18,868 bases of DNA from Leidyana gryllorum EB-2025a (lineage: Eukaryota; Protista; Apicomplexa). How positions within the stretch are numbered: the first letter of the stretch is position 1; each line of letters begins with the position of its first letter. Under the pieces are notes generated by a model. It worked only from the letters and a program-made list of their open reading frames with translations. It ran no database searches and had not been told where the DNA came from. A program made the translations under genes and the position numbers. The stretch is from contig JBLWGC010000171.1 of NCBI GenBank assembly GCA_048772705.1, positions 1 to 18,868 of the forward strand, written 5' to 3'. Of this stretch, positions 1 to 18,868 are shown piece after piece.

Positions 1-61
1 GGAATCGAACCCAGGACTCCTTCCACCCTAAGGAAGGATCATACCACTAGACCAAACAGCC
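1..61 (-). tRNA. tRNA-Pro: tRNA-Pro(AGG), 3' end beyond window
   Basis: GGCTGTTTGGTCTAGTGGTATGATC CTTCC-TTAGGGT-GGAAG ...GGTTCGATTCC; matches copy at 14295. Confidence 0.9.
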
Positions 62-150
62 GCCTAGCCGGTGGTTCAACCCGCTGGGTACAGTCGAGAG
101 ACTCGTCTCACTATGTGAAGTATCACTCAATGCCATGAGGTAGGCACAGC

Positions 151-222
151 GGGAGGCTAGCCCAGATGATGAAACGGTGCTTAGTATACGAAAGGTTCTG
201 GGATCGATTCTCAGCCCATCCG
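151..222 (+). pseudogene. Degraded tRNA-Ala
   Basis: Aligns loosely to Ala(AGC) at 1542 (CTGGGATCGAT T-arm retained). Confidence 0.6.
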
Positions 223-290
223 AACTACATAGATGGAACCCTCGCCGGAGTAGTCTACTTGGCCTATCATTGGCCAATCACCACTCTACT

Positions 291-370
291 TCCGGTGGGA
301 CGGAATCGAACCGCCGACTATCTGATGCCAGCACTACAGTCAGATGCTCTACCAACTGAGCTACCCCCGG
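291..370 (-). tRNA. tRNA-Tyr: tRNA-Tyr(GTA) with 7-nt intron (327-333)
   Basis: C1-G72, A73; TCTGA-CTGTAG[tgctggc]A-TCAGA; GGTTCGATTCC. Confidence 0.93.
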
Positions 371-411
371 CCGTCCAACAGCTCCGGGGTTCGAACGGCT
401 CAACCCCAGAT

Positions 412-470
412 CCTCGCCCTTTCGGACTGCGGTCTGAGCACAGCGCCTTAGACAACTCGGCCATCTTGCC
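412..470 (-). pseudogene. tRNA-Leu(CAG) 5' part, T-arm and 3' acceptor strand lost
   Basis: GGCAAGATGGCCGAG...CTGTG-CTCAGAC-CGCAG TCCGAAAGGG then diverges. Confidence 0.8.
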
Positions 471-564
471 ACAATGTTGTTGGTTCGCCGCTCCACGCGT
501 TTTCTGTGCTTGGAATCTCAAAATGGAAGGACTTTTGGGGTTGGAGGCCGGCGTGTGCAGAGCG

Positions 565-635
565 TCCGAGATACTATAGTGCTTAGTTCTTTCGCCAAGC
601 ACGCGGAAGACCAGGGTCGATTCCCCGTCTCGGAG
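565..635 (+). pseudogene. Degraded tRNA-Asp
   Basis: TCCGAGA...TCTCGGAG ends kept; D-loop and anticodon mutated versus 7375. Confidence 0.85.
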
Positions 636-690
636 CACACTTGGTTGCGCTTAGGATTGTTTCCTTTGGATCTCGCTGAAAGTTGCGAGC

Positions 691-763
691 TACAGCCACC
701 GAGGATCAAACTCGGGAACTTCTGCGTGTAAAGCAGACGTCGTAACCACTAGACCATAGCTGT
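691..763 (-). tRNA. tRNA-Val: tRNA-Val(TAC), T-loop C56>T
   Basis: TCTGC-TTTACAC-GCAGA; acceptor ACAGCTA/TGGCTGT; T-loop TTTGATC. Confidence 0.75.
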
Positions 764-838
764 GCGGACTGGGCGAAGGGGCATGTGTTTTTGAAATCAA
801 GTATCCTCAGAATGTGTAAGCTCAGAAAACTTGGGCGG

Positions 839-917
839 CCCGAAGTACGTCAGCTGGTACAACATCTGAATAGTGCTGGCATCAGATCATTGGCGGTCCG
901 CTTCCCTTCCACCCGGA
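839..917 (+). pseudogene. Degraded tRNA-Tyr retaining intron
   Basis: CATCTGA..TAGTGCTGGCATCAGAT core matches Tyr copies. Confidence 0.8.
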
Positions 918-1015
918 GTGGGAGTGTGTTCCGATCACCACGCACTTCATCAGATGCTCCTGTTGGATGCCATCCCAAGTGACCTTGACTACCTTTATAG
1001 CCTCACCTGGAGATT

Positions 1016-1087
1016 GTCCGAGTCGTCTGGTGGTTAGGACAGCACGTTGTGGCCGTGCAAACCCAGGCTCGATTCCTGGCTTGGATA
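1016..1087 (+). tRNA. tRNA-His: tRNA-His(GTG), non-canonical G14/C54
   Basis: GCACG-TTGTGGC-CGTGC; T-arm CCAGG-CTCGATT-CCTGG. Confidence 0.8.
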
Positions 1088-1207
1088 GTATGTCCCCGAT
1101 GTCTCGAATGGGAAATGTGGGCGAAGTCTGTTTACACCCACCATCGGGCGTAGCTGCCCATGTCCTGTCTTGATCGCTACACACTCCCATTTGACGGCTC
1201 CGCTAGT

Positions 1208-1280
1208 GGCGCTATGGCCTAATGGATATGGCACCGGTCTACGGAACCGGGGTTTCTGGGTTCGAGTCCCAGTAGCGTCT
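1208..1280 (+). tRNA. tRNA-Arg: tRNA-Arg(ACG)
   Basis: CCGGT-CTACGGA-ACCGG; GGTTCGAGTCC; GGCGCTA/TAGCGTC. Confidence 0.93.
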
Positions 1281-1380
1281 GGACGAATGGCCGGGTTGCA
1301 GCCTTTGAGTCAACAACTCAGATCCTGTCTTAGCTGTCCCGGATGGGTCGAGTGCCGTGTTGCGTCAACAACTATCAGAC

Positions 1381-1452
1381 GAGCTGTTCTGGGAATCGAA
1401 CCCAGGACTCCTTCCACCCTAAGGAAGGATCATACCACTAGACTAAACAGCC
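1381..1452 (-). tRNA. tRNA-Pro: tRNA-Pro(AGG)
   Basis: CTTCC-TTAGGGT-GGAAG; full cloverleaf, two substitutions versus 14295. Confidence 0.88.
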
Positions 1453-1541
1453 GCCTAGCCGGTGGTTCAACCCGCTGGGTACAGTCGAGAGAGTGGTCAT
1501 ACGATGTTGAGAACAAAAAAATGCGATGGGGTCTGCACAAT

Positions 1542-1614
1542 GGGCGACTAGCTCAAATGGTAGAGCGCTCGCTTAGCATGCGAGAGGTACTGGGATCGAT
1601 GCCCAGGTCGTCCA
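1542..1614 (+). tRNA. tRNA-Ala: tRNA-Ala(AGC)
   Basis: G3:U70; CTCGC-TTAGCAT-GCGAG; eukaryotic ATCGATG T-loop. Confidence 0.95.
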
Positions 1615-1716
1615 AAGTACGTACGGCTGTAACTGCCGGTGTTTAAATACATATTTGCGACCTTGGAAGGGTCCAAGAGCATAAGTGCCGTCTAGAGAGT
1701 ACGGTGCCGCAGAACT

Positions 1717-1789
1717 CGGTCCTGGCAGGTTTCGAACCTGCGACTTTGTGGTTAACAGCCACACGCTCTGCCGACTGAGCTACAAGACC
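1717..1789 (-). tRNA. tRNA-Asn: tRNA-Asn(GTT)
   Basis: TGTGG-CTGTTAA-CCACA; GGTTCGAAACC; G73. Confidence 0.95.
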
Positions 1790-1911
1790 CAGTGACAATC
1801 TTTCAGAGGTTAGTAGGGATATCCTTCATCTTCTACCGAAGAATTTTGCAGCCCTCTCAGGTCGTTATCGAGACCTTAGAGACCAGCCAGAAAAGCTTAA
1901 GCTCGTGAGCA

Positions 1912-1983
1912 AGCCTTCTGCCGGAATCGAACCAGCGACCTTTCGCTCACTGAGCGAATGCTCTGCCGCTCAGCTAAGAAGGC
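1912..1983 (-). pseudogene. tRNA-Thr(AGT), degenerate
   Basis: Full length but anticodon loop TC-AGT-GA (U33>C, A37>G) and D-arm changes. Confidence 0.75.
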
Positions 1984-2061
1984 AATGCAAGCCGAAGATT
2001 ACAAATCAGTCACTATTGACGGAGATTACTGTGGAGCACTTTGCTCGAGTAGTTCAATGAC

Positions 2062-2126
2062 TTCCACTGCCGGGACTCGAACCCGGATAGTGTGCCGCAT
2101 TTCCTAGCCGCTCAGCCTACAGTGGA
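2062..2126 (-). pseudogene. tRNA-Glu pseudogene, anticodon loop deleted
   Basis: TCCACTG...CAGTGGAA ends kept, internal deletion versus 14993. Confidence 0.85.
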
Positions 2127-2380
2127 CTATTTGCCGAGTTGAGGCTTCTTGAGCGAGTGAACTTCACACCTTCTGGGTCCGGTCCTTAGTGGCTCAAATT
2201 CAGCAGTCAGTTGTCATGCGCTGTGAAAATCGCTGTGGCTGAGGGTCACAGACTCCTCATCTGCGTCGAAACATGCATTTCATTGGTGGAGCGCGTTTGC
2301 TCCGTGATCGAGAAAAAGCGGGCTGCGGTTACTTGGTTCATGTCTCAGCGCGTGCTGCAGCCTCTGTCAAGCTCTCACAT

Positions 2381-2440
2381 GCACCTGTGGTCGAAGGGTA
2401 AGACGTGACCCCTTCAAGGTGGTGGGTTCTGGCAGCTGGA
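2381..2440 (+). pseudogene. Degraded tRNA-Gly(TCC-type)
   Basis: GCACCTGTGGTCGAAGGGTAAGAC matches 5' half of the 3171 gene. Confidence 0.7.
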
Positions 2441-2460
2441 GACGAAGATTCCAGAGAGTT

Positions 2461-2533
2461 TGGACGACCTGGGTATCGATCCCAGTACCTCTCGCATGCG
2501 AAGCGAGCGCTCTACCATCTGAGCTAGCCGCCC
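2461..2533 (-). tRNA. tRNA-Ala: tRNA-Ala(CGC)
   Basis: G3:U70; CTCGC-TTCGCAT-GCGAG. Confidence 0.94.
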
Positions 2534-2604
2534 ATCCGCTCATCATCCGCTCTACATGGAAGACCTATTGCATCCAGTGGCTGACCGAGGGCCGATACAA
2601 CGGC

Positions 2605-2684
2605 TGACAAGAGTGGGATCCGAACCCACGCCCTTTCGGACGGCGGCCTTAAGACAGCGCCTTGGACCACTCGGCCATCTTGCC
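2605..2684 (-). pseudogene. tRNA-Leu(AAG), degenerate
   Basis: Full length; two anticodon-stem mismatches and A58>G versus 3024. Confidence 0.78.
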
Positions 2685-2803
2685 GGAGTGTTCTTGGCTC
2701 GCCACTTTACACGTTTTCTGTTCGCGAAGTCTCGAGAAGGGAGGCTTTTGGGGTTGAAGATGTCGTTCTGGGTGCGGTGTACCGCCCCGAAATACTATCA
2801 CGG

Positions 2804-2883
2804 CCCGCGGTGCTTACATTACAACCCATCTGATTGTAGTGGTGGCATCAGATATTCGACGGGTAAATGCCGTCCCACCCGGA
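2804..2883 (+). pseudogene. Degraded tRNA-Tyr retaining intron
   Basis: CATCTGATTGTAG-tggtggc-ATCAGATA...CCGTCCCACCCGGA. Confidence 0.75.
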
Positions 2884-3023
2884 GTTGAGGAGTGGACTTC
2901 TTACAACGTAATTCGTCTGAGGCTCCTGTTCCATTCCATACTCCGGTCGTCAACCCCAAAAGTCCTCCCTTCTCGAGACTTCACAGACAGAAAGCGTGTA
3001 AAGTGGCGAGCCAAGGGCGCTCC

Positions 3024-3103
3024 GGCAAGATGGCCCAGTGGTCTAAGGCGCTGTGTTAAGGCCGCAGTCCGAAAGGGCGTGGGTTCGAATCCCACTCTTG
3101 TCA
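3024..3103 (+). tRNA. tRNA-Leu: tRNA-Leu(AAG)
   Basis: CTGTG-TTAAGGC-CGCAG; variable arm TCC-GAAA-GGG; GGTTCGAATCC. Confidence 0.92.
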
Positions 3104-3170
3104 ACCGTTGTATTGTATTGAGTCGTCCCCTCTCTTCACCGATAGACAGGTCGTTCGAGCTACAAACGGC

Positions 3171-3241
3171 TGCACCTGCCGGGACTCGAACCCGGGTTAC
3201 GACCTTGGAAGGGTCGCATCTTACCCTTAGACCACAAGTGC
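3171..3241 (-). tRNA. tRNA-Gly: tRNA-Gly(TCC)
   Basis: CGACC-CTTCCAA-GGTCG; GCACTTG/CAGGTGC. Confidence 0.94.
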
Positions 3242-3317
3242 AATTGCGAAAGATCTGCAGCACCCCGAGAGACTCGGGCAATTTCTGCTTCCAGCTGTCT
3301 GCAACCTACTCAAGAAC

Positions 3318-3385
3318 GGACTGTTCGGGGATCGAATCGAGCACTTCCACAGACGAAGGAAACTGATACCACTAGCACTTCAACT
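3318..3385 (-). pseudogene. Highly degraded tRNA-Pro
   Basis: Remnants CTGTTC.GGGATCGAA...GAAGGAA...ATACCACTAG. Confidence 0.55.
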
Positions 3386-3464
3386 CGACATACGGGGCAG
3401 CGGCTCTCATACAGCTAGCAAGCTTGCCTCGGTCGAAACGGAACGTCGTCCGAGTGAGAGGATA

Positions 3465-3537
3465 TGATGCGGATCGGCCTCGGACCCACAACTCCCGGTT
3501 CCGAAGACCGATGCCCTATCCAGTAGGCCACCGCACC
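3465..3537 (-). pseudogene. tRNA-Arg(TCG) with damaged T-arm
   Basis: TCGGT-CTTCGGA-ACCGG intact; T-arm GTGGG-TCCGAGG-CCGAT. Confidence 0.8.
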
Positions 3538-3645
3538 ATGGAGAGGCTTCGGTCATCTCGATACTCGTGAGGTGAAAGAAGTCTTCGATCTCAGAACCTC
3601 CCCCAAACCGTTGTGAAAAAGTGCCAGCGAGTAAGACATGTCGTC

Positions 3646-3727
3646 GGCAAGGTGGCCGAGTGGTTAAGGCGGCGGCCTGCTAAGCCGTTGGGTTCTACCC
3701 GCGTGAGTTCGAATCTCACCCTTGTCG
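3646..3727 (+). tRNA. tRNA-Ser: tRNA-Ser(GCT)
   Basis: GCGGC-CTGCTAA-GCCGT; long variable arm; G73. Confidence 0.95.
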
Positions 3728-3918
3728 GTAGCATTCGGGGAGAGCGCATCTGCTTCAATGATTGAACTGAGGATTTTGGCCGACTCGAATCCAACTCTTT
3801 ACGCTGGGGGCTGTATACAAAAGCCAGTTACAATACTTCAGAGGTTAGTAGAGAGACCCGTGTTTCATGTGTCCAGTTGAGGAAGCGCTAGTCCGACTCT
3901 TCTGGGATGGGCTGAACC

Positions 3919-3988
3919 GGTTGCGTCCTTGGTGGTTAGCACTCGACACTTTGGATTTTCCGACCTGGGTCCGATCCCGGCGCGACCC
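3919..3988 (+). pseudogene. Degraded tRNA-Gln
   Basis: GGTTGCG...CGCGACC ends; D and anticodon arms mutated. Confidence 0.8.
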
Positions 3989-4015
3989 TTGAACTGGGCT
4001 GCGGGGACTATCCAT

Positions 4016-4088
4016 GCAGCCATGGTCTAGTGGTTACGACGTCTGCTTAACACGCAGAAGGTCCCGAGTTCGATCCTCGGTGGCTGTA
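4016..4088 (+). tRNA. tRNA-Val: tRNA-Val(AAC)
   Basis: TCTGC-TTAACAC-GCAGA; identical to 7498 and 9969 copies. Confidence 0.95.
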
Positions 4089-4143
4089 GCTCGCAACTTT
4101 CAGCGGGCACCAAAAAAGACAATCTTAAGCGAGATCAACTGTG

Positions 4144-4215
4144 CTCCGAGACCGGAAATCGAACCCGGGTCTTCCGCGTGACAGGCGGAAATACTAACCA
4201 CTATACTATCTCGGA
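4144..4215 (-). tRNA. tRNA-Asp: tRNA-Asp(GTC)
   Basis: TCCGC-CTGTCAC-GCGGA; one T-stem C>T (G:U). Confidence 0.92.
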
Positions 4216-4309
4216 CGCTCCGAACACACCGGCCTGAAACCCCAAAAGTCCTTCCATCTTGAGATTCCACGGATAGAAAACGCGTGGAGCGGCGAGCCAA
4301 CAACATCCC

Positions 4310-4389
4310 GGCAAGATGACCGAGGGGTCTGAGGCGCTGTGCTCAGACCGGAGTCCGAAAGGTCGTGGGTTCGAATCCCACTTTTGTCA
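4310..4389 (+). tRNA. tRNA-Leu: tRNA-Leu(CAG), several stem mismatches (possible pseudogene)
   Basis: CTGTG-CTCAGAC-CGGAG; G10>A; T-arm intact. Confidence 0.7.
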
Positions 4390-4425
4390 GGCTGCGCCCC
4401 AACCGGGAAAAACATAGAGTCCGGT

Positions 4426-4497
4426 TGAGCCCAGAGTGATTCGAACACCCAACCTTCTGATCTGGAGTCAGACGCGCTACCGTTGCGCCATAGGCCC
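4426..4497 (-). tRNA. tRNA-Trp: tRNA-Trp(CCA)
   Basis: TCTGA-CTCCAGA-TCAGA; GTTCGAATC. Confidence 0.95.
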
Positions 4498-4525
4498 AAA
4501 ACCATCCCCCGTTTCAGACTCATTT

Positions 4526-4589
4526 ACCGGCAATCGGCCGGCTTCTTAGGCGTGACATTCGAAAATAGTAACCACTATGCTATCTCGGA
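4526..4589 (-). pseudogene. Degraded tRNA-Asp
   Basis: TCCGAGATAGCATAGTGGTTA..TGTCACGC remnants. Confidence 0.7.
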
Positions 4590-4669
4590 GCCTCTGAACA
4601 CGCCACGGACATTCCATTCGTTCAGAAAACGGCCGTTACCGTGTACGAGCTTCAACAACAAGGTGTGAC

Positions 4670-4740
4670 GCATCTGTGGTCTAGTGGTAGAATGTCTCGT
4701 TGCCATCGAGGCGACCCGGGTTCGATTCCCGGCAGATGAT
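4670..4740 (+). tRNA. tRNA-Gly: tRNA-Gly(GCC), last 2 nt replaced at a junction
   Basis: TCTCG-TTGCCAT-CGAGG; ends CAGATG-at instead of CAGATGCA. Confidence 0.8.
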
Positions 4741-4745
4741 ACGAG

Positions 4746-4819
4746 AGGAGTGTAGCGCAGTCAGTAGCGCCTAGGTCTCATAATCCTGAAGTACGAGAGT
4801 TCAATCCTCCCCACTCCGC
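4746..4819 (+). pseudogene. Degenerate elongator tRNA-Met(CAT)
   Basis: TAGGT-CTCATAA-TCCTG; D-loop and stem mismatches versus 10755. Confidence 0.8.
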
Positions 4820-4969
4820 ACGGTACGGCTATCGGAAGCGCCGACTAACTCGTATGGGGCGCCACCTGAGAAGAGTGGACTCCAGCTGTCCGCTAGTGTC
4901 TGAGATGTTTGAGTCCGGCTGAGGGGGAAGTCCAGCATCCGGCTCGGTGCCATCTGTCGTGGCAGAAGT

Positions 4970-5044
4970 GGTCGCGTAGCTCGGTCGGTTAGAGCGTGAG
5001 CCGAATGAGCTTAACGTCCCCGGTTCAGAGCCCGGGCGTGACCA
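4970..5044 (+). pseudogene. Degenerate tRNA-Ile(AAT)
   Basis: Matches 18342 gene; A14>G, U33>G, T-loop insertion. Confidence 0.82.
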
Positions 5045-5150
5045 AGTGAGTGGATCTTCATAATGAAAGAGTCGCCCTGCACTCGAGCAACCCCCAACAG
5101 TTACTGGCGACCAATACGAAAGGTACGTGTTATAAAGTCCTCACTTCCCT

Positions 5151-5222
5151 GCCGCGCGCAGCTCCGTCGGTAGAGCGCAAAACTTTCAATGGATGAGACC
5201 GCGGGTTCGGGCAGCGCCAGCA
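5151..5222 (+). pseudogene. Degraded tRNA-Lys
   Basis: GCCGC..AGCTC.GTCGGTAGAGCGCAA...CGCGGGTTCG similar to 5938 gene. Confidence 0.7.
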
Positions 5223-5355
5223 GTCCGAGTCAAGCTTGTGCGCTAACGATTCAGAAAACGGCCGTTACCGTGTACGAGCTTCAACAAGAACCACTAAATG
5301 CTATGGGGTCTGCACAGCGGGCGACTAGCTGGAATGATATAGCACAAGGTGTGAC

Positions 5356-5426
5356 GCATCTGTGGTCTAGTGGTAGAATGTCTCGTTGCCATCGAGGCGA
5401 CCCGGGTTCGATTCCCGGCAGATGCA
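5356..5426 (+). tRNA. tRNA-Gly: tRNA-Gly(GCC)
   Basis: GCATCTG/CAGATGC; TTGCCAT loop; GGTTCGATTCC. Confidence 0.95.
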
Positions 5427-5491
5427 GAGGACACATGGTTGCTTTTCCACCATTCAGAAATAAGGGTGTTTAACCCTCCAACCACATCGCA

Positions 5492-5573
5492 CGACAACTG
5501 CTGGATTTGAACCAGCGCGGCCCCGGCCCAGTAGATTTCTAGTCTACCCCCTTAACCACTCGGGCAAGTTGCC
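5492..5573 (-). tRNA. tRNA-Ser: tRNA-Ser(AGA)
   Basis: GTAGA-CTAGAAA-TCTAC; long variable arm with one mismatch. Confidence 0.85.
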
Positions 5574-5634
5574 GTTGTCGAACTTGGCATTTTGCGGCCA
5601 GTGGCTTCACATACGGTTCAGCAAGCTTTACTAG

Positions 5635-5706
5635 GACTGCTCGCGCCGCCCGAACTCGCGGTTCTCCCTTCAAAAGTCTTGTGCTCTACGACGGAGTTGG
5701 GGCGGC
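5635..5706 (-). pseudogene. Degraded tRNA-Lys
   Basis: GCCGCCCC...GTAGAGCACAAGACTTTTG; homologous to 5938 gene. Confidence 0.68.
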
Positions 5707-5804
5707 AAGAAAGCTCGGACTTGGTAACAAATTCCAGTCGTATTGATGGTGGAATCTTTCCGAGACGGTTCGGCTCTCGGCCGAAGCCTAAACTCGAGCA
5801 CTTG

Positions 5805-5877
5805 TCCACTGTAGTCTAAGTGGCTAGGATATGCGGCTTTCACCCGCACGATCCGGGTTCCAGTCCCGGCAGTGGAA
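5805..5877 (+). tRNA. tRNA-Glu: tRNA-Glu(TTC), T-loop 57>C
   Basis: TGCGG-CTTTCAC-CCGCA; TCCACTG/CAGTGGA. Confidence 0.88.
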
Positions 5878-5937
5878 CTCCAGCTGAGTGTGCTTGTAGG
5901 CAACAGTTCCATTCTTACTCCCAGGGAAATAGATGCA

Positions 5938-6010
5938 CACCGCCCGCGGGGCTCCAACCCGCGACTGCAAGATTAAGAGTCTTGCGCTCTACCGACTGAG
6001 CTAGGGCGGC
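5938..6010 (-). tRNA. tRNA-Lys: tRNA-Lys(CTT), C56>G
   Basis: CAAGA-CTCTTAA-TCTTG; T-loop TTGGAGC. Confidence 0.85.
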
Positions 6011-6086
6011 AGGAATGCAAGGACACAAAACCCGATAGCCCGACATCTTAAGTGGCTTTGGTACCCACCAGCCTCACTTGAAGATT

Positions 6087-7146: not shown

Positions 7147-7204
7147 ATCCGCTCTACATGGAAGATCTATTGCATCCAGTGGCTGACCGAGCCGATACAA
7201 CGGC

Positions 7205-7283
7205 TGACAAGCGTGGCTTCGAACCCACGCCCTTTCGGACTGCGGCCTAAACACAGCGCCTTAGACTACTCGGCCATCTTGCC
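7205..7283 (-). pseudogene. tRNA-Leu(TAG), degenerate
   Basis: CTGTG-TTTAGGC-CGCAG; G18>A, 1-nt deletion in T-arm. Confidence 0.78.
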
Positions 7284-7374
7284 GGAGTGCTCTTGGTTCG
7301 TCCCTCCACGCTTTTTTTGTTCGTGAGCCGAAATAAAAAGACTTCTGGGATTGGAGGCCGGCGTGTTCCGAGCG

Positions 7375-7446
7375 TCCGAGATAGTATAGTGGTTAGTATT
7401 TCCGCCTGTCACGCGGAAGACCCGGGTTCGATTCCCGGTCTCGGAG
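7375..7446 (+). tRNA. tRNA-Asp: tRNA-Asp(GTC)
   Basis: Intact cloverleaf, G73. Confidence 0.96.
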
Positions 7447-7497
7447 CATAGGTGATCTCGCTTAAGATTGTCTTGGTGCCCGCTGAAAGTTGCGAGC

Positions 7498-7570
7498 TAC
7501 AGCCACCGAGGATCGAACTCGGGACCTTCTGCGTGTTAAGCAGACGTCGTAACCACTAGACCATGGCTGC
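7498..7570 (-). tRNA. tRNA-Val: tRNA-Val(AAC)
   Basis: Intact, identical to 4016. Confidence 0.95.
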
Positions 7571-7634
7571 ATGGATGGTCCCCGCAGCCCAAGAGAAGTG
7601 GCGAAGCTTGAGGGAGTAGTGAGGACCAGTTCAA

Positions 7635-7704
7635 GGGTCGCGCCGGGATCGAACCCAGGTCGCAAAATCCAAAGTGTCGAGTGCTAACCACCAAGGAGGC
7701 AACC
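7635..7704 (-). pseudogene. Degraded tRNA-Gln
   Basis: Shares lesions with 3919 copy. Confidence 0.8.
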
Positions 7705-7861
7705 GGTTCAGCCCATCCCAGAAGAGTCGGACTAGCGCTTCCTCAACTGGACACATGCAACACGGGTCTTGTATACAGACCCCAGCGTCAAGAGTTGGAT
7801 TCGAGTCGGGAAAAAACCTCAGTTCAATCATTCAACCAGTTGCGCTCTCCCCGAATGCTAC

Positions 7862-7943
7862 CGACAAGGGTGAGATTCGAACTCACGCGGGTGGCACCCA
7901 ACGGCTTAGCAGGCCGCCGCCTTAACCACTCGGCCACCTTGCC
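7862..7943 (-). tRNA. tRNA-Ser: tRNA-Ser(GCT)
   Basis: Differs from 3646 only in variable loop. Confidence 0.95.
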
Positions 7944-8051
7944 GACGACATCTCTTACTCGCTGGCACTTTTCACAACGGTTTGGGGTCCTAGTCAAGCT
8001 TGCTGAACCGTATGTGACATCACTGGCCGCAAAATGCCGAGTTCGACAGGT

Positions 8052-8447: not shown

Positions 8448-8519
8448 TCCGAGATAGTATAGTGGTCAGTATTTCCGCCTGTCACGCGGAAGACCCGGGT
8501 TCGATTCCCGGTCTCGGAG
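8448..8519 (+). tRNA. tRNA-Asp: tRNA-Asp(GTC)
   Basis: Intact cloverleaf. Confidence 0.95.
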
Positions 8520-8569
8520 CACAGATGGCTTCGCTGAAGATTCTTTGGTTCTCGATGAACGTCGCGAGC

Positions 8570-10710: not shown

Positions 10711-10754
10711 AAACGATAGCATGATGAGTTTGTCGGCGGTTTCGATTCCGACCG

Positions 10755-10950: not shown

Positions 10951-11021
10951 GCATCTGTGGTCTAGTGGTAGAATGTCTCGTTGCCATCGAGACGACCCGG
11001 GTTCGATTCCCGGCAGATGCA
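10951..11021 (+). tRNA. tRNA-Gly: tRNA-Gly(GCC)
   Basis: Intact; TCTCG-TTGCCAT-CGAGA. Confidence 0.96.
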
Positions 11022-11171
11022 GAGGACACATGGTTGTTTTTCCACCATTCCAGAAATTCCGTCCCGCCGGGAGTTGAGGAGTGCACTTCTTACAACGTAG
11101 TTCGTCTGACACTCCTGTTCCTTTCCACCCTGATCGATGCTTCGCTACATCTACAGCCTCGCTCAAAGATT

Positions 11172-11322: not shown

Positions 11323-11395
11323 TGCACCTGCCGGGACTCGAACCCGGATCGTGCGGGTGAAAGCCGCATATCCTAGCCACTTAGACTACAGTGGA
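11323..11395 (-). pseudogene. Chimeric tRNA: Glu(TTC) body with Gly(TCC) 3' acceptor strand
   Basis: 5' TCCACTG...TTC..., ends CCCGGCAGGTGCA plus the Gly(TCC) flank seen at 3161-3171. Confidence 0.88.
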
Positions 11396-11577: not shown

Positions 11578-11657
11578 CCGGGGGTAGCTCAGTTGGTAGA
11601 GCATCTGACTGTAGTGCTGGCATCAGATAGTCGGCGGTTCGATTCCGTCCCACCGGA
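11578..11657 (+). tRNA. tRNA-Tyr: tRNA-Tyr(GTA) with 7-nt intron (11615-11621)
   Basis: Identical to 291-370 copy. Confidence 0.93.
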
Positions 11658-12005: not shown

Positions 12006-12078
12006 GGGCGACTAGCTCAAATGACATAGCACTCGCTTAACATGCGAGAGATACTGGGATCGATGCCCAGGTCGTCCA
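12006..12078 (+). pseudogene. tRNA-Ala-derived gene with AAC anticodon, damaged D-arm
   Basis: GGGCGAC/GTCGTCC with G3:U70; CTCGC-TTAACAT-GCGAG; D-loop lacks GG. Confidence 0.82.
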
Positions 12079-12153
12079 AGCCTCTAACGGCTGCACCCGC
12101 GGTATATGAAAACAGAGTCACGACGAAGGGAGTTGATGCCCGATCACATCACA

Positions 12154-12235
12154 CGACAACTGCTGGATTTGAACCAGCGCGGGCCAGGCCCAGTAGATTT
12201 CGAGTCTACCCCCTTAACCATTCGGGCAAGTTGCC
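12154..12235 (-). tRNA. tRNA-Ser: tRNA-Ser(CGA)
   Basis: GTAGA-CTCGAAA-TCTAC; G15>A only. Confidence 0.92.
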
Positions 12236-12431
12236 AACGGTCAAACTCGGCAACCCGCAGACAGTGGCTTCACGTACGGTTCAGCAAGCTTGACTCATCT
12301 CCTGTCTCAAATAAGATAACGAGTCTTTCGAACTCCGCCTGCCACGTCACTCGACAGCTGCTAGATTCGAACCAGTGGGGCCAGGCGATACTGACGACTC
12401 AGGCGTTTGAGACAGTGAGGCTGTGGGTTGT

Positions 12432-12504
12432 GCGGTGGTGGCGCAATGGATAGCGTGTTGCCCTCCGGAGGCAAAGGTTGTGGGTTCGAGTCCCGCCCAC
12501 CGTT
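12432..12504 (+). tRNA. tRNA-Arg: tRNA-Arg(CCG)
   Basis: TTGCC-CTCCGGA-GGCAA; A20 in D-loop; GGTTCGAGTCC. Confidence 0.93.
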
Positions 12505-12771
12505 CTCGTGGTCTCGCTCAACAGTGGAATCGAGAAGAGTGGCTGCCATTCGGAGCCATGCAGACTTGCGCCATCCAAACTCAAGTTTGGGACCGCGGGC
12601 CACCACCCGATCTGTGCACTCTACTCTTTGAGCTAGAGGTCTCTTACTTCGAAGAGCTATTGCATGCCGTGCTTGGTGAGTGGACGATTGCCCATTGAAA
12701 ATCTGCGGAACGCTGCTGGTAAGCTCGAGTCGCACGGCTGCGAGGGATGACACCAAATGTCACAACCTCTC

Positions 12772-12844
12772 TGCCTCGGCCGTGGATCGAAGACGGGACT
12801 TTCAGATCTTCAGTCTGGCGCTTTCCCAACTGAGCTACCGAGGC
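12772..12844 (-). tRNA. tRNA-Phe: tRNA-Phe(GAA), three substitutions including G53>C (possible pseudogene)
   Basis: CCAGA-CTGAAGA-TCTGA; compare intact 16214 copy. Confidence 0.75.
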
Positions 12845-12931
12845 GGTAGGTAGTCACGGGAGGCGGTGAAAATAAGCACTTATCGCGGCCGTATGTGGGG
12901 CCACTCCTCGCCGCATGCCGGAATCGACAGT

Positions 12932-13007
12932 TGTCAACTTGCCCGAGTAGGGAAGGGGGGAATTCAACTGGGCCTGGGCCGCGCTGGTGCAGATCCAGCA
13001 GTTGTCG
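12932..13007 (+). pseudogene. tRNA-Ser pseudogene, anticodon arm disrupted
   Basis: CAACTTGCCCGAGT...CTGGGCCTGGGCCGCGCTGG...CAGTTGTCG. Confidence 0.82.
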
Positions 13008-13108
13008 TGCGATGTGATAGGGGTCAGACACCAACTCACGCATGAATTCTGTGGTGGAGATGATGCTATTCCCAGCATCAAACCCTCATATGGACCGAGA
13101 CAGCGAAT

Positions 13109-13180
13109 GCGTTCTTAGCTTAGGGGCAGAGCATTCGCTTAGTAAGCGAAAGGTCGCCGGTTCGATTCCGGCAGAAGGCT
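13109..13180 (+). tRNA. tRNA-Thr: tRNA-Thr(AGT), G3:G70 mismatch
   Basis: TTCGC-TTAGTAA-GCGAA; GGTTCGATTCC. Confidence 0.87.
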
Positions 13181-13345
13181 TTGATGCATCGATAGGCTTA
13201 TAAGAAATGGCTGTCACCGCGTACAAGATTGAACAGGGTCCTGTTCTGTATCTTCTCTCGCTACCATCGAGATAACCCGTGTCCGATTCCCGACAGATGC
13301 AAAACGATAGCATGATGAGTTTGTCGGCGGTTTCGATTCCGACCC

Positions 13346-13418
13346 TGGGAATGGAGAGGATCGAACTCTCGACTTCAGGATTATGAGACCTACGAGCCAC
13401 CGACCGCGCTACACTTCC
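13346..13418 (-). pseudogene. Degenerate elongator tRNA-Met(CAT)
   Basis: Anticodon and T-arms intact; A14>G, D-stem and acceptor mismatches. Confidence 0.78.
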
Positions 13419-13494
13419 CCTCCGACTTTTTCCGAAGAATTACCCGAACCCACAAGCATGCTGCCAGCCAGGTTGGGTCAAGATACAACAAACC

Positions 13495-13566
13495 GGGCTG
13501 TTCTGGGATTCGAGCCCAGGACTTCTTCCACCCGAAGGAAGAATCATACCACTAGACCAAACAGCC
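13495..13566 (-). tRNA. tRNA-Pro: tRNA-Pro(CGG), T54>C
   Basis: CTTCC-TTCGGGT-GGAAG. Confidence 0.87.
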
Positions 13567-13655
13567 GACAACCCACCATCCCGGTACAGCCTACAGTACT
13601 GTGGAATCAGTCGGCACAGCACGCGTTTCGGCTCCCTCTTTCATGTTGGACACTG

Positions 13656-13727
13656 AGCAGCGTGGCTCAGTTGGAGAGTGTTGGGCTCATGACAGGAATG
13701 TCCGTCGGTCGAAACGACGCACTGCTA
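13656..13727 (+). pseudogene. Degenerate initiator tRNA-Met
   Basis: A1-U72 (AGCAGCG...CTGCTA), GGG-CTCAT, TCGAAA T-loop; 3' anticodon stem no longer pairs. Confidence 0.8.
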
Positions 13728-13786
13728 AGCGTCAACAGGAGGACACACTTATAGAAATGATACAGGCGTCTTTTTGATTGAAGAGC

Positions 13787-13858
13787 TCCCCGATCTGGCT
13801 ATCAACCGCTACACGTTTGGCGTGCAAAGTCACCTCTCTACCACTTGAAATAGCCGCC
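13787..13858 (-). pseudogene. Highly degraded tRNA-Ala(TGC)
   Basis: Remnants TGCAAAG...CTCTACCA...TAGCCGCC align to 9596 copy. Confidence 0.5.
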
Positions 13859-14050
13859 AACCCGCCAAACCCAACTGAACTTTCCCCGACTCGGTTCCTC
13901 AACAGTGGCACTTCGAGCTCTCAAGCTCAACACTGCGGCACAGATCGCGGGGTGGTCGGAGATGCCAAACTCGAATTTGGATCGCGTAAGTCTGCATGGC
14001 TCGGAATGTCAGCCACTCTTATCGATTCCGCTGTAGAGCGAGACCACGAG

Positions 14051-14123
14051 AACGGTGGGCGGGACTCAAACCCACAACCTTTGCCTCCGGAGGGCAACAC
14101 GCTATCCATTGCGCCACCACCGC
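14051..14123 (-). tRNA. tRNA-Arg: tRNA-Arg(CCG), C56>T
   Basis: One change versus 12432. Confidence 0.85.
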
Positions 14124-14294
14124 ACAATCCACAGCCTCACTGTCTGCGACCCCTGAGTCGGTGATATCGCCTGGCCCCGCTGGTTCGATTCAGCAGTTGT
14201 CAAGTGGACGTAGTAGGCGGACTTCGAAAGACTCCTTACCTTATTTGAGACACGGGTATCAACTCTGCTAGACCCTCGTCAGAGCCTAGCAAAA

Positions 14295-14366
14295 GGGCTG
14301 TTCTGGGAATCGAACCCAGGACTCCTTCCACCCTAAGGAAGGATCATACCACTAGACCAAACAGCC
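14295..14366 (-). tRNA. tRNA-Pro: tRNA-Pro(AGG)
   Basis: Intact cloverleaf. Confidence 0.95.
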
Positions 14367-14454
14367 GACTGGTCGGTGGTGCAAATTGCTGGTAGAGTCG
14401 GGACACTGGTCATAATATGTCAAGAACCACTAAATGCTATGGTGTCTGCAAAGC

Positions 14455-14527
14455 GGGCCGCTAGCTCAAATGACATAGCACTCGCTTGACATGCGAGAGA
14501 TACTGGGATCGATGCCCAGGTCGTCCA
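14455..14527 (+). pseudogene. tRNA-Ala-derived gene with GAC anticodon, damaged D-arm
   Basis: Shares D-arm lesions with 12006; loop TTGACAT. Confidence 0.82.
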
Positions 14528-14606
14528 AGCCTCTAACGGCTGCACCCGCGGTATATGAAAACAACAGAGTCACGACCGAAGGGAGTTGATGCCCGATCAC
14601 ATCGCA

Positions 14607-14688
14607 CGACAACTGCTGGATTTGAACCAGCGCGGGCCCGGCCCAGTAGATTTCGAGTCTACCCCCTTAACCACTCGGGCAAGTTGCC
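14607..14688 (-). tRNA. tRNA-Ser: tRNA-Ser(CGA)
   Basis: Intact cloverleaf with variable arm. Confidence 0.95.
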
Positions 14689-14750
14689 GCTGTCGAACTT
14701 GGCATTTTGCGGCCAGTGGCTTCACATACGGTTCAGCGAGCTTTACTAGG

Positions 14751-14822
14751 ACTGCTCGCGCCGCCCAAACCCGCGGATCTCCCTTCAAAAGTCTTGCGCT
14801 CTACTGACGGAGTTGGGGCGCC
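14751..14822 (-). pseudogene. Degraded tRNA-Lys
   Basis: Same remnant as 5635-5706. Confidence 0.68.
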
Positions 14823-14992
14823 AAGGAAGCTCGCCCCGTACCCGAGGAAGGCCCAATATTCCACGATCAATACAAATGGAATTGGTTACTAAGTCCGAAT
14901 CTGTATCAGAGATCCACTCACTTGATCACGCCGACATACCATGTTTTCCAAGACGGTACGGCTCTCGGCCGAAGCCCCAACTCAACCACTCG

Positions 14993-15065
14993 TCCACTGT
15001 AGTCTAAGTGGCCAGGATATGCGGCTTTCACCCGCACGATCCGGGTTCAAGTCCCGGCAGTGGAA
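14993..15065 (+). tRNA. tRNA-Glu: tRNA-Glu(TTC)
   Basis: Intact cloverleaf. Confidence 0.95.
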
Positions 15066-15141
15066 GTCATTGAACTACTCTAGCAAAGTGCTCCACTAAT
15101 CTCCGTCAATAGCGATTGTTTCGTCATCTCCGGCTTCCATT

Positions 15142-15213
15142 GCCTTCTTAGTTTAGGGGCAGAGCGTTCGCTTCGTAAGCGAGAAGTCGCCGGTTCGATT
15201 CCGGCTGAAGGCT
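15142..15213 (+). tRNA. tRNA-Thr: tRNA-Thr(CGT), two substitutions
   Basis: TTCGC-TTCGTAA-GCGAG; T7:T66 mismatch. Confidence 0.83.
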
Positions 15214-15343
15214 CGACTGCATCGACTGGGTACCGGCAAGCTGCTCGCAAACTCCAATAATCGTAGCTCAGCCATCAGAGGTAAGTCTCTCAGCCACGAA
15301 GTCGCAGGTTTGGAACCTGCCGATACCTGAGGCACCCACAGGG

Positions 15344-15415
15344 GGCTGTTTGGTCTAGTTATATGATTCTTTCTTCGGCTGGAAGAAGTCCTGGGTTCAA
15401 TGCCACGTCTCTCCA
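15344..15415 (+). pseudogene. Degraded tRNA-Pro(CGG), 3' end replaced (Ala-like)
   Basis: GGCTGTTTGGTCTAG...TTCGG...CTGGGTTCAA then TGCCACGTCTCTCCA. Confidence 0.75.
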
Positions 15416-15516
15416 AGGTCGGCTACTATACGCGGCTCCCACTCGTACAATCCCGAATGAAGTCCAGACCAGCTGAGACAAAATCTGAGTTGCACCAGTT
15501 GTGAGGGCTGGAACTG

Positions 15517-15588
15517 CTCCGAGACCGGGAATCGAACCCGGGTCTTCCGCGTGACAGGCGGAAATACTAACCACTATACTATCTCGGA
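15517..15588 (-). tRNA. tRNA-Asp: tRNA-Asp(GTC)
   Basis: Intact, identical to 7375. Confidence 0.96.
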
Positions 15589-15681
15589 CGCTCCGAACAC
15601 ACCGGCCTGAAACCCCAAAAGTCCTTCCGTCTTGAGATTCCAGGATAGAAAACGCGTGGAGCGGCGAGCCAACAACATCCC

Positions 15682-15761
15682 GGCAAGATGACCGAGTGGT
15701 CTGAGGCGCTGTGCTCAGACCGGAGTCCGAAAGGTCGTGGGTTCGAATCCCACTTTTGTCA
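15682..15761 (+). tRNA. tRNA-Leu: tRNA-Leu(CAG), stem mismatches shared with 4310
   Basis: CTGTG-CTCAGAC-CGGAG. Confidence 0.72.
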
Positions 15762-15797
15762 GGTTGCGCCCCAAGCGGGAAAAACATAGAGTCCGGT

Positions 15798-15869
15798 TGA
15801 GCCCAGAGTGATTCGAACACCCAACCTTCTGATCTGGAGTCAGACGCGCTACCGTTGCGCCATAGGCTC
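15798..15869 (-). tRNA. tRNA-Trp: tRNA-Trp(CCA)
   Basis: GAGCCTA/TGGGCTC; CTCCAGA loop. Confidence 0.95.
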
Positions 15870-15897
15870 AAAACCATCCCCCGTTCCAGACTCATTT

Positions 15898-15957
15898 ACC
15901 GGCAATCGGGCCCGCTTCTTAGGCGTGACATGCGAAAATAGTAACCACTATCTCGGA
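15898..15957 (-). pseudogene. Degraded tRNA-Asp
   Basis: Same remnant as 4526-4589 with an extra deletion. Confidence 0.65.
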
Positions 15958-16037
15958 CGCTCTGAACACGCCACGGACATTCCATTCGTTCAGAAAACGG
16001 CCGTTACCGTGTACGAGCTTCAACAACAAGGTGTCAC

Positions 16038-16108
16038 GCATGTGTGGTCTAGTGGTAGAATGTCTCGTTGCCATCGAGACGACCCGGGTTCGATTCCCGG
16101 CAGATGCA
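16038..16108 (+). tRNA. tRNA-Gly: tRNA-Gly(GCC), G5:G68 mismatch
   Basis: One change versus 10951. Confidence 0.88.
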
Positions 16109-16213
16109 GAGGACACGTGCTTGTTTTTACCATTCCAACAATTCATGCGTAAGTTGGCCCCACATACGGTCGCGCTAAGTGCTTATTTTCACCGCCTTCC
16201 ATGACTTTCTAGC

Positions 16214-16286
16214 GCCTCGGTAGCTCAGTTGGGAGAGCGCCAGACTGAAGATCTGGAAGTCCCGTGTTCGATCCACGGCCGAGGCA
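16214..16286 (+). tRNA. tRNA-Phe: tRNA-Phe(GAA)
   Basis: CCAGA-CTGAAGA-TCTGG; G20; CCGTG-TTCGATC-CACGG. Confidence 0.96.
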
Positions 16287-16765
16287 GAGAGGTCGTGACA
16301 TCTGGTGTCAGAATTCCTCGCCCCTCAGCTAACCAGGCAGGCCCTGTCTCGATCACATGAGGGGCAGTGGAAGTCCTTGGAGTACTTCAACAACCTCCCT
16401 CAACGGGCTTAGATGCGTGATTTCCTTCTTGGATTGCCTTGTAAGCTTAGGGGCAGAGCGTTTGAGTGGTGAGGTTTCACAAAGTAGTGCATTTGGCCAT
16501 GTTGCCAGCTCGCTTTCTGTCCCGTCACTCCAACCTTTGTAGTCTGTTGGGCTGACACGCGACTCCCACATACTACGGAAGTTCCAGCTCTGGGAGTAGA
16601 GCCACTTCACATGTCAGGCTATCGGGTTTTGTGCCCTTTGATCCATCGATAGGCTGTCTAACACGGACAGGAAACGGGTAACACTTCGGCAAGATGGAGT
16701 GCTGTGCAAGCCGCCGTCCGAAAATGCGGGCGGATGATCGCAACCATGTTTAGGCTAATGACTGA

Positions 16766-16837
16766 AGCCTCCTGCCAGAATCGAACCAGCGACCTTTCGC
16801 TTACAAAGCGAATGCTCTGCCCCTAAGCTAAGGAGGC
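16766..16837 (-). tRNA. tRNA-Thr: tRNA-Thr(TGT)
   Basis: One T-stem change versus 8198. Confidence 0.9.
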
Positions 16838-16941
16838 ATTCCCTGTCTCGACCCATATGAGTTTTTGATGCTGGGAATTGCATCATTTCCACCACAGAAT
16901 TCATGCGTGAGTTGGCGTGTGACCCCTCCAATCACATCGCA

Positions 16942-17024
16942 CGACAACTGCTGGATCTGCACCAGCGCGGCCCAGGCCCAGTTGAATTCCAATCTACCCC
17001 CCTTCCCCACTCGGGCAAGTTGGC
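16942..17024 (-). pseudogene. Degraded tRNA-Ser
   Basis: Shares lesions (GGTGCAGATCC) with 12932 copy. Confidence 0.82.
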
Positions 17025-17112
17025 AACTGTCCATTCCGGCATGCGGCGAGGGGTGGCCCCACATACGGCCGCGATAAGTGCTTATTTTCACCGCCTCCCG
17101 TGCCTACCTACC

Positions 17113-17185
17113 GCCTCGGTAGCTCAGTTGGGAAAGCGCCAGACTGAAGATCTGAAAGTCCCGTCTTCGATCCACGGCCGAGGCA
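17113..17185 (+). tRNA. tRNA-Phe: tRNA-Phe(GAA), same three substitutions as 12772 (possible pseudogene)
   Basis: Identical to 12772 copy. Confidence 0.75.
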
Positions 17186-17450
17186 GAGAGGTTGTGACAT
17201 TTGGTGTCATCCCTCGCAGCCGTGCGACTCGAGCTTGCCAGCAGCGTTCCGCAGATTTTCAATGGGCAATCGTCCACTCCAAGCACGGCATGCAATAGCT
17301 CTTCGAAGTTGGAGACCGCTAGCTCAAAGGGTAGAGTGCACAGATCGCGTGGTGGCCCGCGGTCCCGAACTTGAGTTTGGATGGCGCAAGTCTGCATGGC
17401 TCCGAATGGCAGCCACTCTTCTCGATTCCACTGTTGAGCGAGACCACAAG

Positions 17451-17523
17451 AACGGTGGGCGGGACTCGAACCCACAACCTTTGCCTCCGGAGGGCAACTC
17501 GCTATCCATTGCGCCACCACCGC
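17451..17523 (-). tRNA. tRNA-Arg: tRNA-Arg(CCG)
   Basis: One D-stem change versus 12432. Confidence 0.87.
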
Positions 17524-17719
17524 ACAATCCACAGCCTCACTGTCTCAAACGCCTGAGTCGTCAGTATCGCCTGGCCCCACTGGTTCGAATCTAGCAGCTG
17601 TCGAGTGACGTGGCAGGTGGAGTTCGAAAGACTCGTTATCTTATTTGAGACAGGGCATGAGTCAAGCTTGCTGAACCGTATGTGAAGCCACTGTTCGCGG
17701 GATGCCGAGTTCGACCGTT

Positions 17720-17801
17720 GGCAACTTGCCCGAGTGGTTAAGGGGGTAGACTCGAAATCTACTGGGCCTGGCCCGCGCTGGTTCAAATCCAGCAGTCGTC
17801 G
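17720..17801 (+). tRNA. tRNA-Ser: tRNA-Ser(CGA), one acceptor mismatch
   Basis: GTAGA-CTCGAAA-TCTAC. Confidence 0.88.
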
Positions 17802-17865
17802 TGCGATGTGATCGGAGGGTCAAACACCAACTCACGCATAAAACTCAACCATGTGTCACCTCCTC

Positions 17866-17955
17866 TGCATCTGCCGGGGGGCGAACCCGGGTCGTCTCGA
17901 TGGCAACGAGACATTCTACCACTAGACCACAGATCTACCACTAGACCACAGATGC
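17866..17955 (-). pseudogene. tRNA-Gly(GCC) with 19-nt internal tandem duplication and altered T-loop
   Basis: TCTACCACTAGACCACAGA twice (17915-17933, 17934-17952). Confidence 0.87.
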
Positions 17956-18095
17956 ATAATATCTTGTTGTTTTAGCAGCTGACTGCATATCAGCGCAAGC
18001 CCGTGTTTGAACTCCGCGGGTGCTCTGAAGATGACCTGAAACGCTCAAAGATGTTGGATCTCCATTCCTGATCACGATGCAATGAGTCTGGAGCG

Positions 18096-18165
18096 GGGCC
18101 TGTGGCGGAACATAGCGGGTCTGACTTCAGCTTAGAAAATTGGGCGTTCGAATCACTCAATTAGA
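18096..18165 (+). pseudogene. Degraded tRNA-Trp (anticodon reads TCA)
   Basis: GGGCCTGTGGCG...TCTGA-CTTCAGC-TTAGA...GTTCGAATCACTC; 3' acceptor strand lost. Confidence 0.75.
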
Positions 18166-18341
18166 CCTCATGTTCTTCCCGTACGGGGCGCAACCTGAGA
18201 AGAGTGGGGATTCGGGCCGACGCCCTTCCAGCGCTTTGCGCTGTCTACAGCTTCTTGCCAAGGTCGGAATGGCTCTGATGTTTGATTCTAGCTCAGGGGG
18301 GATCCAGCATCCGGGTCGGCGCCATCTGTCGTCGCAGAAGT

Positions 18342-18416
18342 GGTCGCGTAGCTCAGTCGGTTAAGAGCGTGAGCCTAATAAGCTCAAGGTCCCCGGTTCG
18401 AGCCCGGGCGTGACCA
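18342..18416 (+). tRNA. tRNA-Ile: tRNA-Ile(AAT)
   Basis: TGAGC-CTAATAA-GCTCA; GGTCGCG/CGTGACC. Confidence 0.93.
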
Positions 18417-18516
18417 AGTGAGTGGATCTCTGATAAAGTGTTGCCCTGGACCCGAGGAAGCCCCAACATTCTGCGACCAATACGGGAGGAACTAGTTACT
18501 AAGTCCGAGCTTCCTT

Positions 18517-18588
18517 GCCGCGCCAGCTTCGTCGGTAGACCCCTAGACTTTCAATGGAGAGACCGCGGCTTCGAGCAGCGCGAGCAGT
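18517..18588 (+). pseudogene. Degraded tRNA-Lys
   Basis: Same remnant family as 5151, 5635, 14751. Confidence 0.62.
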
Positions 18589-18651
18589 CCGACTCAAGCT
18601 TGCTGAACCGTATGTGAAGCCACGGGGCGCAAGATGCCAAGTCCGACAGGT

Positions 18652-18732
18652 GGCAACTTGCCGAGTGGTTAGGGGGAACTCGAGTATTCTTACTGGGCCT
18701 GGCCCTCGCTGGTTCAAATCGAGCAGTTGTCG
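18652..18732 (+). pseudogene. Degraded tRNA-Ser(CGA)
   Basis: GGCAACTTG...CAGTTGTCG ends; indels in D and anticodon arms. Confidence 0.82.
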
Positions 18733-18801
18733 TGCGATGTGACTGGAGGGTCAGACACCAATTCACGTAGAAGGCGCAATCAACCTTGGCGCGATCTCCT
18801 C

Positions 18802-18868
18802 TGCATCTGCCGGGAAGCAAACCTGGGTCGTCTCGGTGGCAACGACACATTCTACCAAGAGACCACAG
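18802..18868 (-). pseudogene. Degraded tRNA-Gly(GCC), 5' end beyond window
   Basis: GTAGAATGTGTCGTTGCCACCGAGACGACCCAGG shares lesions with 9255 copy. Confidence 0.8.

Follow-up and report, generated by a model that had tools for sequence, protein, structure and literature searches.

The DNA considered here is the complete contig JBLWGC010000171.1 (C171; 18,868 nucleotides, hereafter the window) of a 15.5-Mb, 237-contig gregarine-like apicomplexan assembly, and from end to end it is a continuous array of tRNA genes and their relics. We consider it probable, at roughly 55%, that in this array we see the organism's own set of tRNA genes, expanded into a repeat compartment that is maintained by conversion, selected as a pool, and eroded in its terminators. 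An ancestral compact cluster holding a full gene set would have grown about 200-fold by recombination at the DNA level; blocks of the array have been duplicated, inverted, and deleted, with junctions both in shared tRNA bodies, by homologous exchange, and as blunt joins in the spacers. Gene conversion over short tracts, acting among hundreds of 72-bp bodies of identical sequence, would have kept the consensus functional while swapping anticodons, and with thousands of copies, selection would act on the pool instead of on single genes, so that terminators could erode. The cell's tRNA would derive from some of the copies, probably by way of RNA polymerase III (Pol III) transcripts that have long trailers or read through and that ordinary processing nucleases trim.

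Content and extent of the array

Searching the window with consensus genes built from the array itself returned 124 tRNA-derived elements that occupy 45% of its bases, compared with zero or one in each of five shuffled windows; the array is real and far beyond chance. Intact or nearly intact elements make up 67 of the 124 (52 at most one base off the consensus and 15 with two to four differences), and the others are degenerate but full length (38) or fragments (19). ARAGORN called 75 tRNA genes and Rfam 74. These genes, 34 on the forward strand and 41 on the reverse, carry 36 anticodons covering all 20 amino acids, a few of them on damaged bodies (Leu-TAG at 7202, Val-TAC at 691). No tandem unit was found in the window beyond a single 19-bp doublet, and no protein gene either, as open reading frames reach at most 178 amino acids and run across tRNA genes, and the eight tested had no Pfam match. 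The first-pass annotation, made from the window alone, had claimed more than 100 tRNA-derived elements on both strands, all 20 amino acids with about 36 anticodons, no protein genes, and no fixed repeat unit, all of which held. Its initiator tRNA-Met is also present, although the window's sole copy is degenerate, and the three Met calls by ARAGORN are of the elongator type.

That annotation also listed isoacceptors for which it saw no intact copy. Intact genes for Arg-CCT, Gly-CCC, Ile-TAT, Leu-CAA, Leu-TAA, Ser-TGA, Val-CAC, Lys-TTT, and Glu-CTC are indeed missing from the window but not from the array; because all nine are found in sister contigs, their absence here reflects sampling. Selenocysteine (Sec), the last entry on the list, was not seen in 139 kb, in which no separate search was aimed at it.

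The array extends far beyond the window. Fifteen of 20 sampled genome stretches carry it, including both ends of 77- to 90-kb contigs, exact 20-mer markers gave 306 genome-wide matches for Asp and 126 for Trp, and at least 88 of the 237 contigs hold array sequence. Marker density in 129 kb of sampled array sequence, about 6% of the total, places its size near 2.2 Mb of the 15.5 Mb (2.0 to 2.3 Mb; pooled Poisson range, 1.5 to 3.5 Mb), a share above 10% of the genome that is a density estimate and not a census. At 3.9 per kb over about 2 Mb, the genome would hold at least 8,000 detectable tRNA genes, and a rough genome-wide search listed 11,591 candidates. The best single-domain HSP70 matches, at 77%, are from Gregarina niphandrodes and Protomagalhaensia wolfi, and the ribosomal DNA (rDNA) is eukaryotic; both indicate a gregarine-like apicomplexan. 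On the HSP70 evidence, Blastocystis was rejected as the source.

None of the 45 Leu-TAA matches falls on C104 or C230, both megabase gene contigs, and among the 100 Trp marker matches listed, none is on C104 or C169. Since the Leu-TAA matches all avoid those two gene contigs, we infer the array to be the tRNA complement itself, not an extra.

An 8.5-kb mirror-image match of 99.4% between C66 and C98 (L019:1503-10000 and L020:1503-10000) may be a recent duplication or a pair of haplotigs, and in the latter case the size estimate would be inflated. ARAGORN also reported a copy with a CTA (amber) anticodon at L003:2949-3021, probably one point mutant among many.

Cassette shuffling and sequence turnover

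The window is 80% self-matching, through 47 direct and 47 inverted matches of at least 100 bp, and 99% of its bases have a homologue elsewhere in the array. Its mapped features are as follows.

1..18868: continuous tRNA-gene array, a mosaic of about 35 blocks of 0.06 to 1.7 kb each, the blocks 85 to 98% identical to other array contigs
291..370, reverse strand: tRNA-Tyr(GTA) with a 7-nt intron; a second copy at 11578-11657, forward strand
999..2695: His-Arg-Pro-Ala-Asn-Thr...Ala-Leu, the longest block that also occurs on another contig, at 96.8% to C163
4015..4740: recurrent cassette Val-Asp-Leu(CAG variant)-Trp-Asp relic-Gly; its Asp-to-Gly portion occurs again at 15515-16106, 96.5%
4310..4389, forward strand: variant Leu-CAG lineage whose D-stem and anticodon stem contain broken pairs; near-identical copy at 15682-15761, seven copies sampled
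4423..4498, reverse strand: tRNA-Trp(CCA) with a terminator of four or more T's, one of six terminator-bearing genes among 57 intact genes scored in the window
5356, 10951, 14295, 15795, and 16038: the other five terminator-bearing genes
5151..5224, forward strand: old Lys-like relic fixed as a spacer and copied along with its block, 72 to 74% to consensus; also at 5636, 14751, and 18517
7204..7990: block Leu-Asp-Val-Gln relic-Ser, an inverted copy of 3601-4390, 84%
11324..11395, reverse strand: by sequence, a chimeric gene with a Glu(TTC) body and a 3' acceptor end that matches Gly(TCC) at 3168-3242, the two parts being joined via the T-arm common to both
12006..12079, forward strand: degenerate Ala body with a mutated anticodon, labeled Val-AAC by ARAGORN
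12140..13181: Ser-Arg-Leu relic-Phe-Ser relic-Thr, the left arm of an inverted duplication of 1.05 kb, 94.9% to 16765-17815
16765..17815: right arm of the same duplication; the Thr anticodon differs between arms (AGT versus TGT)
13656..13727, forward strand: degenerate initiator tRNA-Met, the only one in the window, 86% to consensus

Gene order in the array is cassette-shuffled, not random. Only 191 types of neighbor pair were observed, compared with 563 in shuffles, and 84% of adjacencies belong to types seen at least three times, compared with 26%. Neighbors are arranged in tandem (376), convergently (227), or divergently (223). Distinct sequence plateaus near 10.5 kb in the 129 kb sampled, and this plateau, together with the recurrent neighbors, argues that the shuffled pieces are multigene cassettes, drawn from a repertoire as large as a single compact full-set cluster. 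The array would then be an approximately 200-fold amplification of a compact cluster of about 10 kb. The Leu-CAG variant lineage is a dead or altered gene carried through such block duplication.

Clusters of the size proposed for the ancestor do exist. A metagenome scan with a Pro pattern recovered 46 dense tRNA loci, among them compact complete eukaryotic sets from aquatic samples and from many distinct organisms (L115, which includes Sec, L080/L071, L053, L120, L060, L068, and L106), with 60 to 85 genes and 38 to 46 anticodons in 10 to 15 kb, or 5 to 7 genes per kb. Like the array, these clusters pack a full eukaryotic anticodon set densely and often on both strands, but they are only 5 to 26% self-covered and mostly T-run terminated, a run of four T's (T4) following 76% of their genes. 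Their identity to the gregarine genes, compared with the Ala family left out, is about 78%, which makes them analogues of the putative ancestor instead of close kin. No paper describing compact complete aquatic eukaryotic tRNA clusters was found. Along with the plateau and the recurrent neighbors, their existence supports the earlier suggestion that a compact, near-complete cluster was amplified and shuffled.

Junctions between blocks indicate where exchange takes place. Among 168 junction calls, 65 overlap by 41 to 110 bp and 63 are blunt, mostly in spacers. The long-overlap class falls within a tRNA body in 53 cases (82%, versus 36% expected), and over all junctions 55% lie in tRNA sequence, versus about 41% expected. 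Upstream and downstream flank types reassort through the bodies in seven families. tRNA bodies are favored though not exclusive exchange sites, and we regard the mechanism of array turnover as reasonably supported.

The bodies also diverge slowly. Between copies that sit in the same flank context, divergence is 4.0% for bodies and 8.2% for flanks, and bodies plateau near 5% while flanks reach 15%. Such a difference could reflect selection on each copy, but mutations in near-perfect copies are blind to structure: stem C>T changes, which wobble pairing tolerates, number 33 versus 35 G>A, and stems receive 54% of mutations with 55% of the sites. Isoacceptors are mixed in a single flank context (eight Glu-TTC with four Glu-CTC; five Leu-AAG with three Leu-CAG), no preferential preservation of the A-box or B-box was seen in decaying copies, and per-copy purifying selection was not seen on array genes. 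A simple comparison of perfect genes with spacers is biased and carries no weight in this assessment. Slow divergence of bodies, structure-blind mutation, and anticodon swaps together point to short-tract gene conversion among near-identical bodies as a better explanation than per-copy selection. Nearly every family consensus gene folds into a canonical cloverleaf, so the pool has been under selection. Gly-GCC and Asp-GTC genes (e.g., 10951-11050 and 8448-8545 in the window) have about 20 bp in common around the T-arm as well as related 3' flanks, which suggests exchange across families.

A scrambled repeat invites the concern that chimeric reads, or the collapse of a simple unit, created the scramble during amplification or assembly. 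No public sequencing run contained more than 7% of the window's words, and the C66/C98 match could represent haplotigs. However, copies differ by 3 to 24% with a transition-rich spectrum, the inverted arms are 94.9% and 96.7% alike and not identical, 100 of the 168 junctions are spanned by another copy, and arrays extend through 77- to 90-kb contigs. With both blocks and junctions recurring in copies 85 to 97% identical, we judge misassembly very unlikely.

Still less probable is spread through RNA, as tRNA-derived short interspersed elements (SINEs) or retrocopies mobilized by resident retrotransposons. Gypsy elements and inserts resembling solo long terminal repeats (LTRs) do occur in and beside the array, but spacers are copied together with genes as multigene blocks, CCA follows the discriminator base in only 5 of 631 cases, A34>G changes number 0 of 106, and there is no A58 footprint. 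The Tyr(GTA) gene at 291..370 retains its intron and is therefore no retrocopy. Retroposition is rejected, since the kept intron and the lack of encoded CCA or modification footprints leave no sign of an RNA intermediate.

The solo-LTR-like inserts are 600 to 800 bp long (L001:4208-4811, L006:433-1239, L006:3941-4522, and L007:4030-4631), and two of them are 94 to 98% identical to a stretch of the retrotransposon-bearing contig C6. Rfam found nothing in two long array inserts. On C2, an open 1,277-amino-acid Ty3/gypsy Gag-Pol (L006:5715-9903) lies beside the array, non-array sequence beginning about 20 to 25 bp upstream of a tRNA gene. A further two inserts sit upstream of tRNA genes at distances of about 65 and 95 bp, too small a sample to judge tRNA-targeted integration.

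Termination and the role of the array

Array genes depart from the canonical Pol III type 2 unit, in which oligo-T directly follows the gene. T4 occurs within 25 nt downstream of 30 of 334 intact genes (9%), equal to the upstream control (32), and counting degenerate T5-like motifs would add 9 of 334. T4 lies a median of 320 nt away. If the polymerase required it, transcription would run across another intact same-strand gene 35% of the time and across an antisense gene 49% of the time. Terminators are retained by Trp, in most Gly-GCC contexts, and by about 30 Asp copies genome-wide. Neither an alternative terminator motif nor a common upstream motif was evident among array genes. The idea that the C37 termination subunit of Pol III has been lost was rejected, the RPC5/C37 gene being present with an open frame.

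Human tRNA genes (tDNAs) offer a partial precedent. Some have distant or noncanonical terminators and yield read-through pre-tRNAs, and like array genes, they lack T4 in the near 3' flank (PMC3141230). The array differs from the human case (PMC3141230) in that 91% of intact genes are without T4 within 25 nt. Most array copies may be silent, or read through, or terminated noncanonically as some human tDNAs are (PMC3141230).

Several observations weigh against the reading of the array as a conversion-maintained, pool-selected tRNA complement. Among Gly-GCC copies, those that carry a terminator have decayed less than those that lack one, a hint that some lineages are under selection. Spacers hold 45% of junctions, and junction calls are not independent of one another. 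About 6% of the array was read, from a part of the marker-bearing contigs. Neither the strand asymmetry nor the excess of near-flank mutations expected of transcription-associated mutagenesis was seen, and since that signal is absent, most copies may be silent.

If many copies were active, the array could instead be a dosage reservoir, thousands of genes being selected to feed a very large, fast-growing trophozoite from one nucleus. About half of the elements are intact or nearly so, and intact copy number tracks codon demand across 43 anticodons (Spearman 0.60, p 2e-5, from 5,300 codons in ten open reading frames). But copy number also tracks the proportions of unrelated compact clusters (0.53), so the numbers may be inherited, and there are outliers such as Cys, with 11 copies for 80 codons, and Ile, with 6 copies for 331. 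Per-copy selection was not seen, and terminators are mostly lacking. Annotated tRNAs number 14 in the giant gregarine Porospora gigantea and 231 in G. niphandrodes, although short-read drafts could hide arrays. On balance we find a dosage role unlikely.

A structural job seems doubtful as the reason for keeping the array, whether as a chromosome-end cap replacing telomere repeats, a role proposed for the Entamoeba arrays, or as a centromere or heterochromatin boundary of dense TFIIIC sites. The array begins contig C43, with markers reaching to about 134 kb of 553 kb, and it begins C2, where it borders the Ty3/gypsy Gag-Pol. No canonical telomere repeat array was found in the assembly, which has no TTAGGG x3 and a single internal TTTAGGG dimer, and in Entamoeba every chromosome has one of its ends capped by an array. 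Array position at these contig starts, together with the missing telomere repeats, is suggestive only. Assemblies break at repeats, which leaves repeats at contig ends; telomere repeats may have diverged or may be missing from the assembly; and decaying copies show no preferential retention of A- and B-boxes.

The preferred reading can be extended, as a tentative possibility that we would not bet on, to an organism that draws its whole tRNA supply from a terminator-free, two-strand, recombining megabase array through read-through polycistronic Pol III RNA. Its chromosome ends or centromeres would be formed by the array and retrotransposon nests, in convergence with Entamoeba.

Relation to known tRNA gene arrays

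Entamoeba, likewise a parasitic protist, keeps nearly all of its tRNA genes in arrays that exceed 10% of the genome and lie at a single end of every chromosome, built from 25 to 28 uniform head-to-tail units of 1 to 5 tRNA genes, with short tandem repeat (STR) spacers in E. histolytica/dispar (PMC2652664; bioRxiv 10.64898/2026.07.06.736064). The gregarine array resembles it in apparently holding nearly all tRNA genes in more than a tenth of the genome (about 2.2 of 15.5 Mb by estimate), and it may also do so in chromosome-end position. In contrast, it is one mixed pool of all isotypes in both orientations, with 191 neighbor types, no uniform tandem unit, about half of its elements decayed, and spacers of complex sequence and tRNA relics in place of STRs. 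Bacterial and phage tRNA arrays fit no better, given A34 (inosine-type) anticodons, intron-bearing Tyr genes, a eukaryotic genome, and mixed orientation. The first-pass annotation had anticipated both mismatches.

The closest descriptive match is the tRNA gene island, a large mixed cluster of many families in variable orientation known from Chlamydomonas and metazoans; islands form a minor part of metazoan repertoires, and singletons are nearly exclusive in surveyed protists (PMC13578239). The array has the makeup of an island, as its genes number at least 5 in a 5-kb span, represent many isotypes side by side, show no repeated motif, and are mixed in orientation. Unlike known islands, it spans about 2 Mb, consists of recopied cassettes, and seems to make up the entire repertoire. 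Trypanosomatid clusters are likewise heterogeneous and hold most tRNA genes, but they are far smaller (2 to 10 genes each, 66 to 120 genes per genome) and have T-run terminators (PMC2695483). Sequenced apicomplexans have 14 to 231 annotated tRNA genes, and no paper on such an array layout in gregarines was found in an incomplete coverage of the literature.

The array would be a second independent protist case of more than one-tenth of a genome in tRNA arrays, with a build unlike that of Entamoeba, where array function is a long-standing open question. Its thousands of natural replicates bear on the rates of gene conversion between isoacceptors and on whether Pol III genes need an oligo-T terminator.

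Other repeats in the assembly also show unusual arrangements. An rDNA fold-back (L021, C73:805-3957) places two facing 5.8S genes around a truncated large-subunit gene and may be a real inversion or an assembly artefact. In another rDNA unit (L023, C157:7169-10321) the small-subunit gene is interrupted by unrelated sequence, and the same contig has an array-type tRNA-Arg match at 1403. About 40 HSP70-family matches lie on C2, C104, and C230, many as tandem runs of divergent copies.

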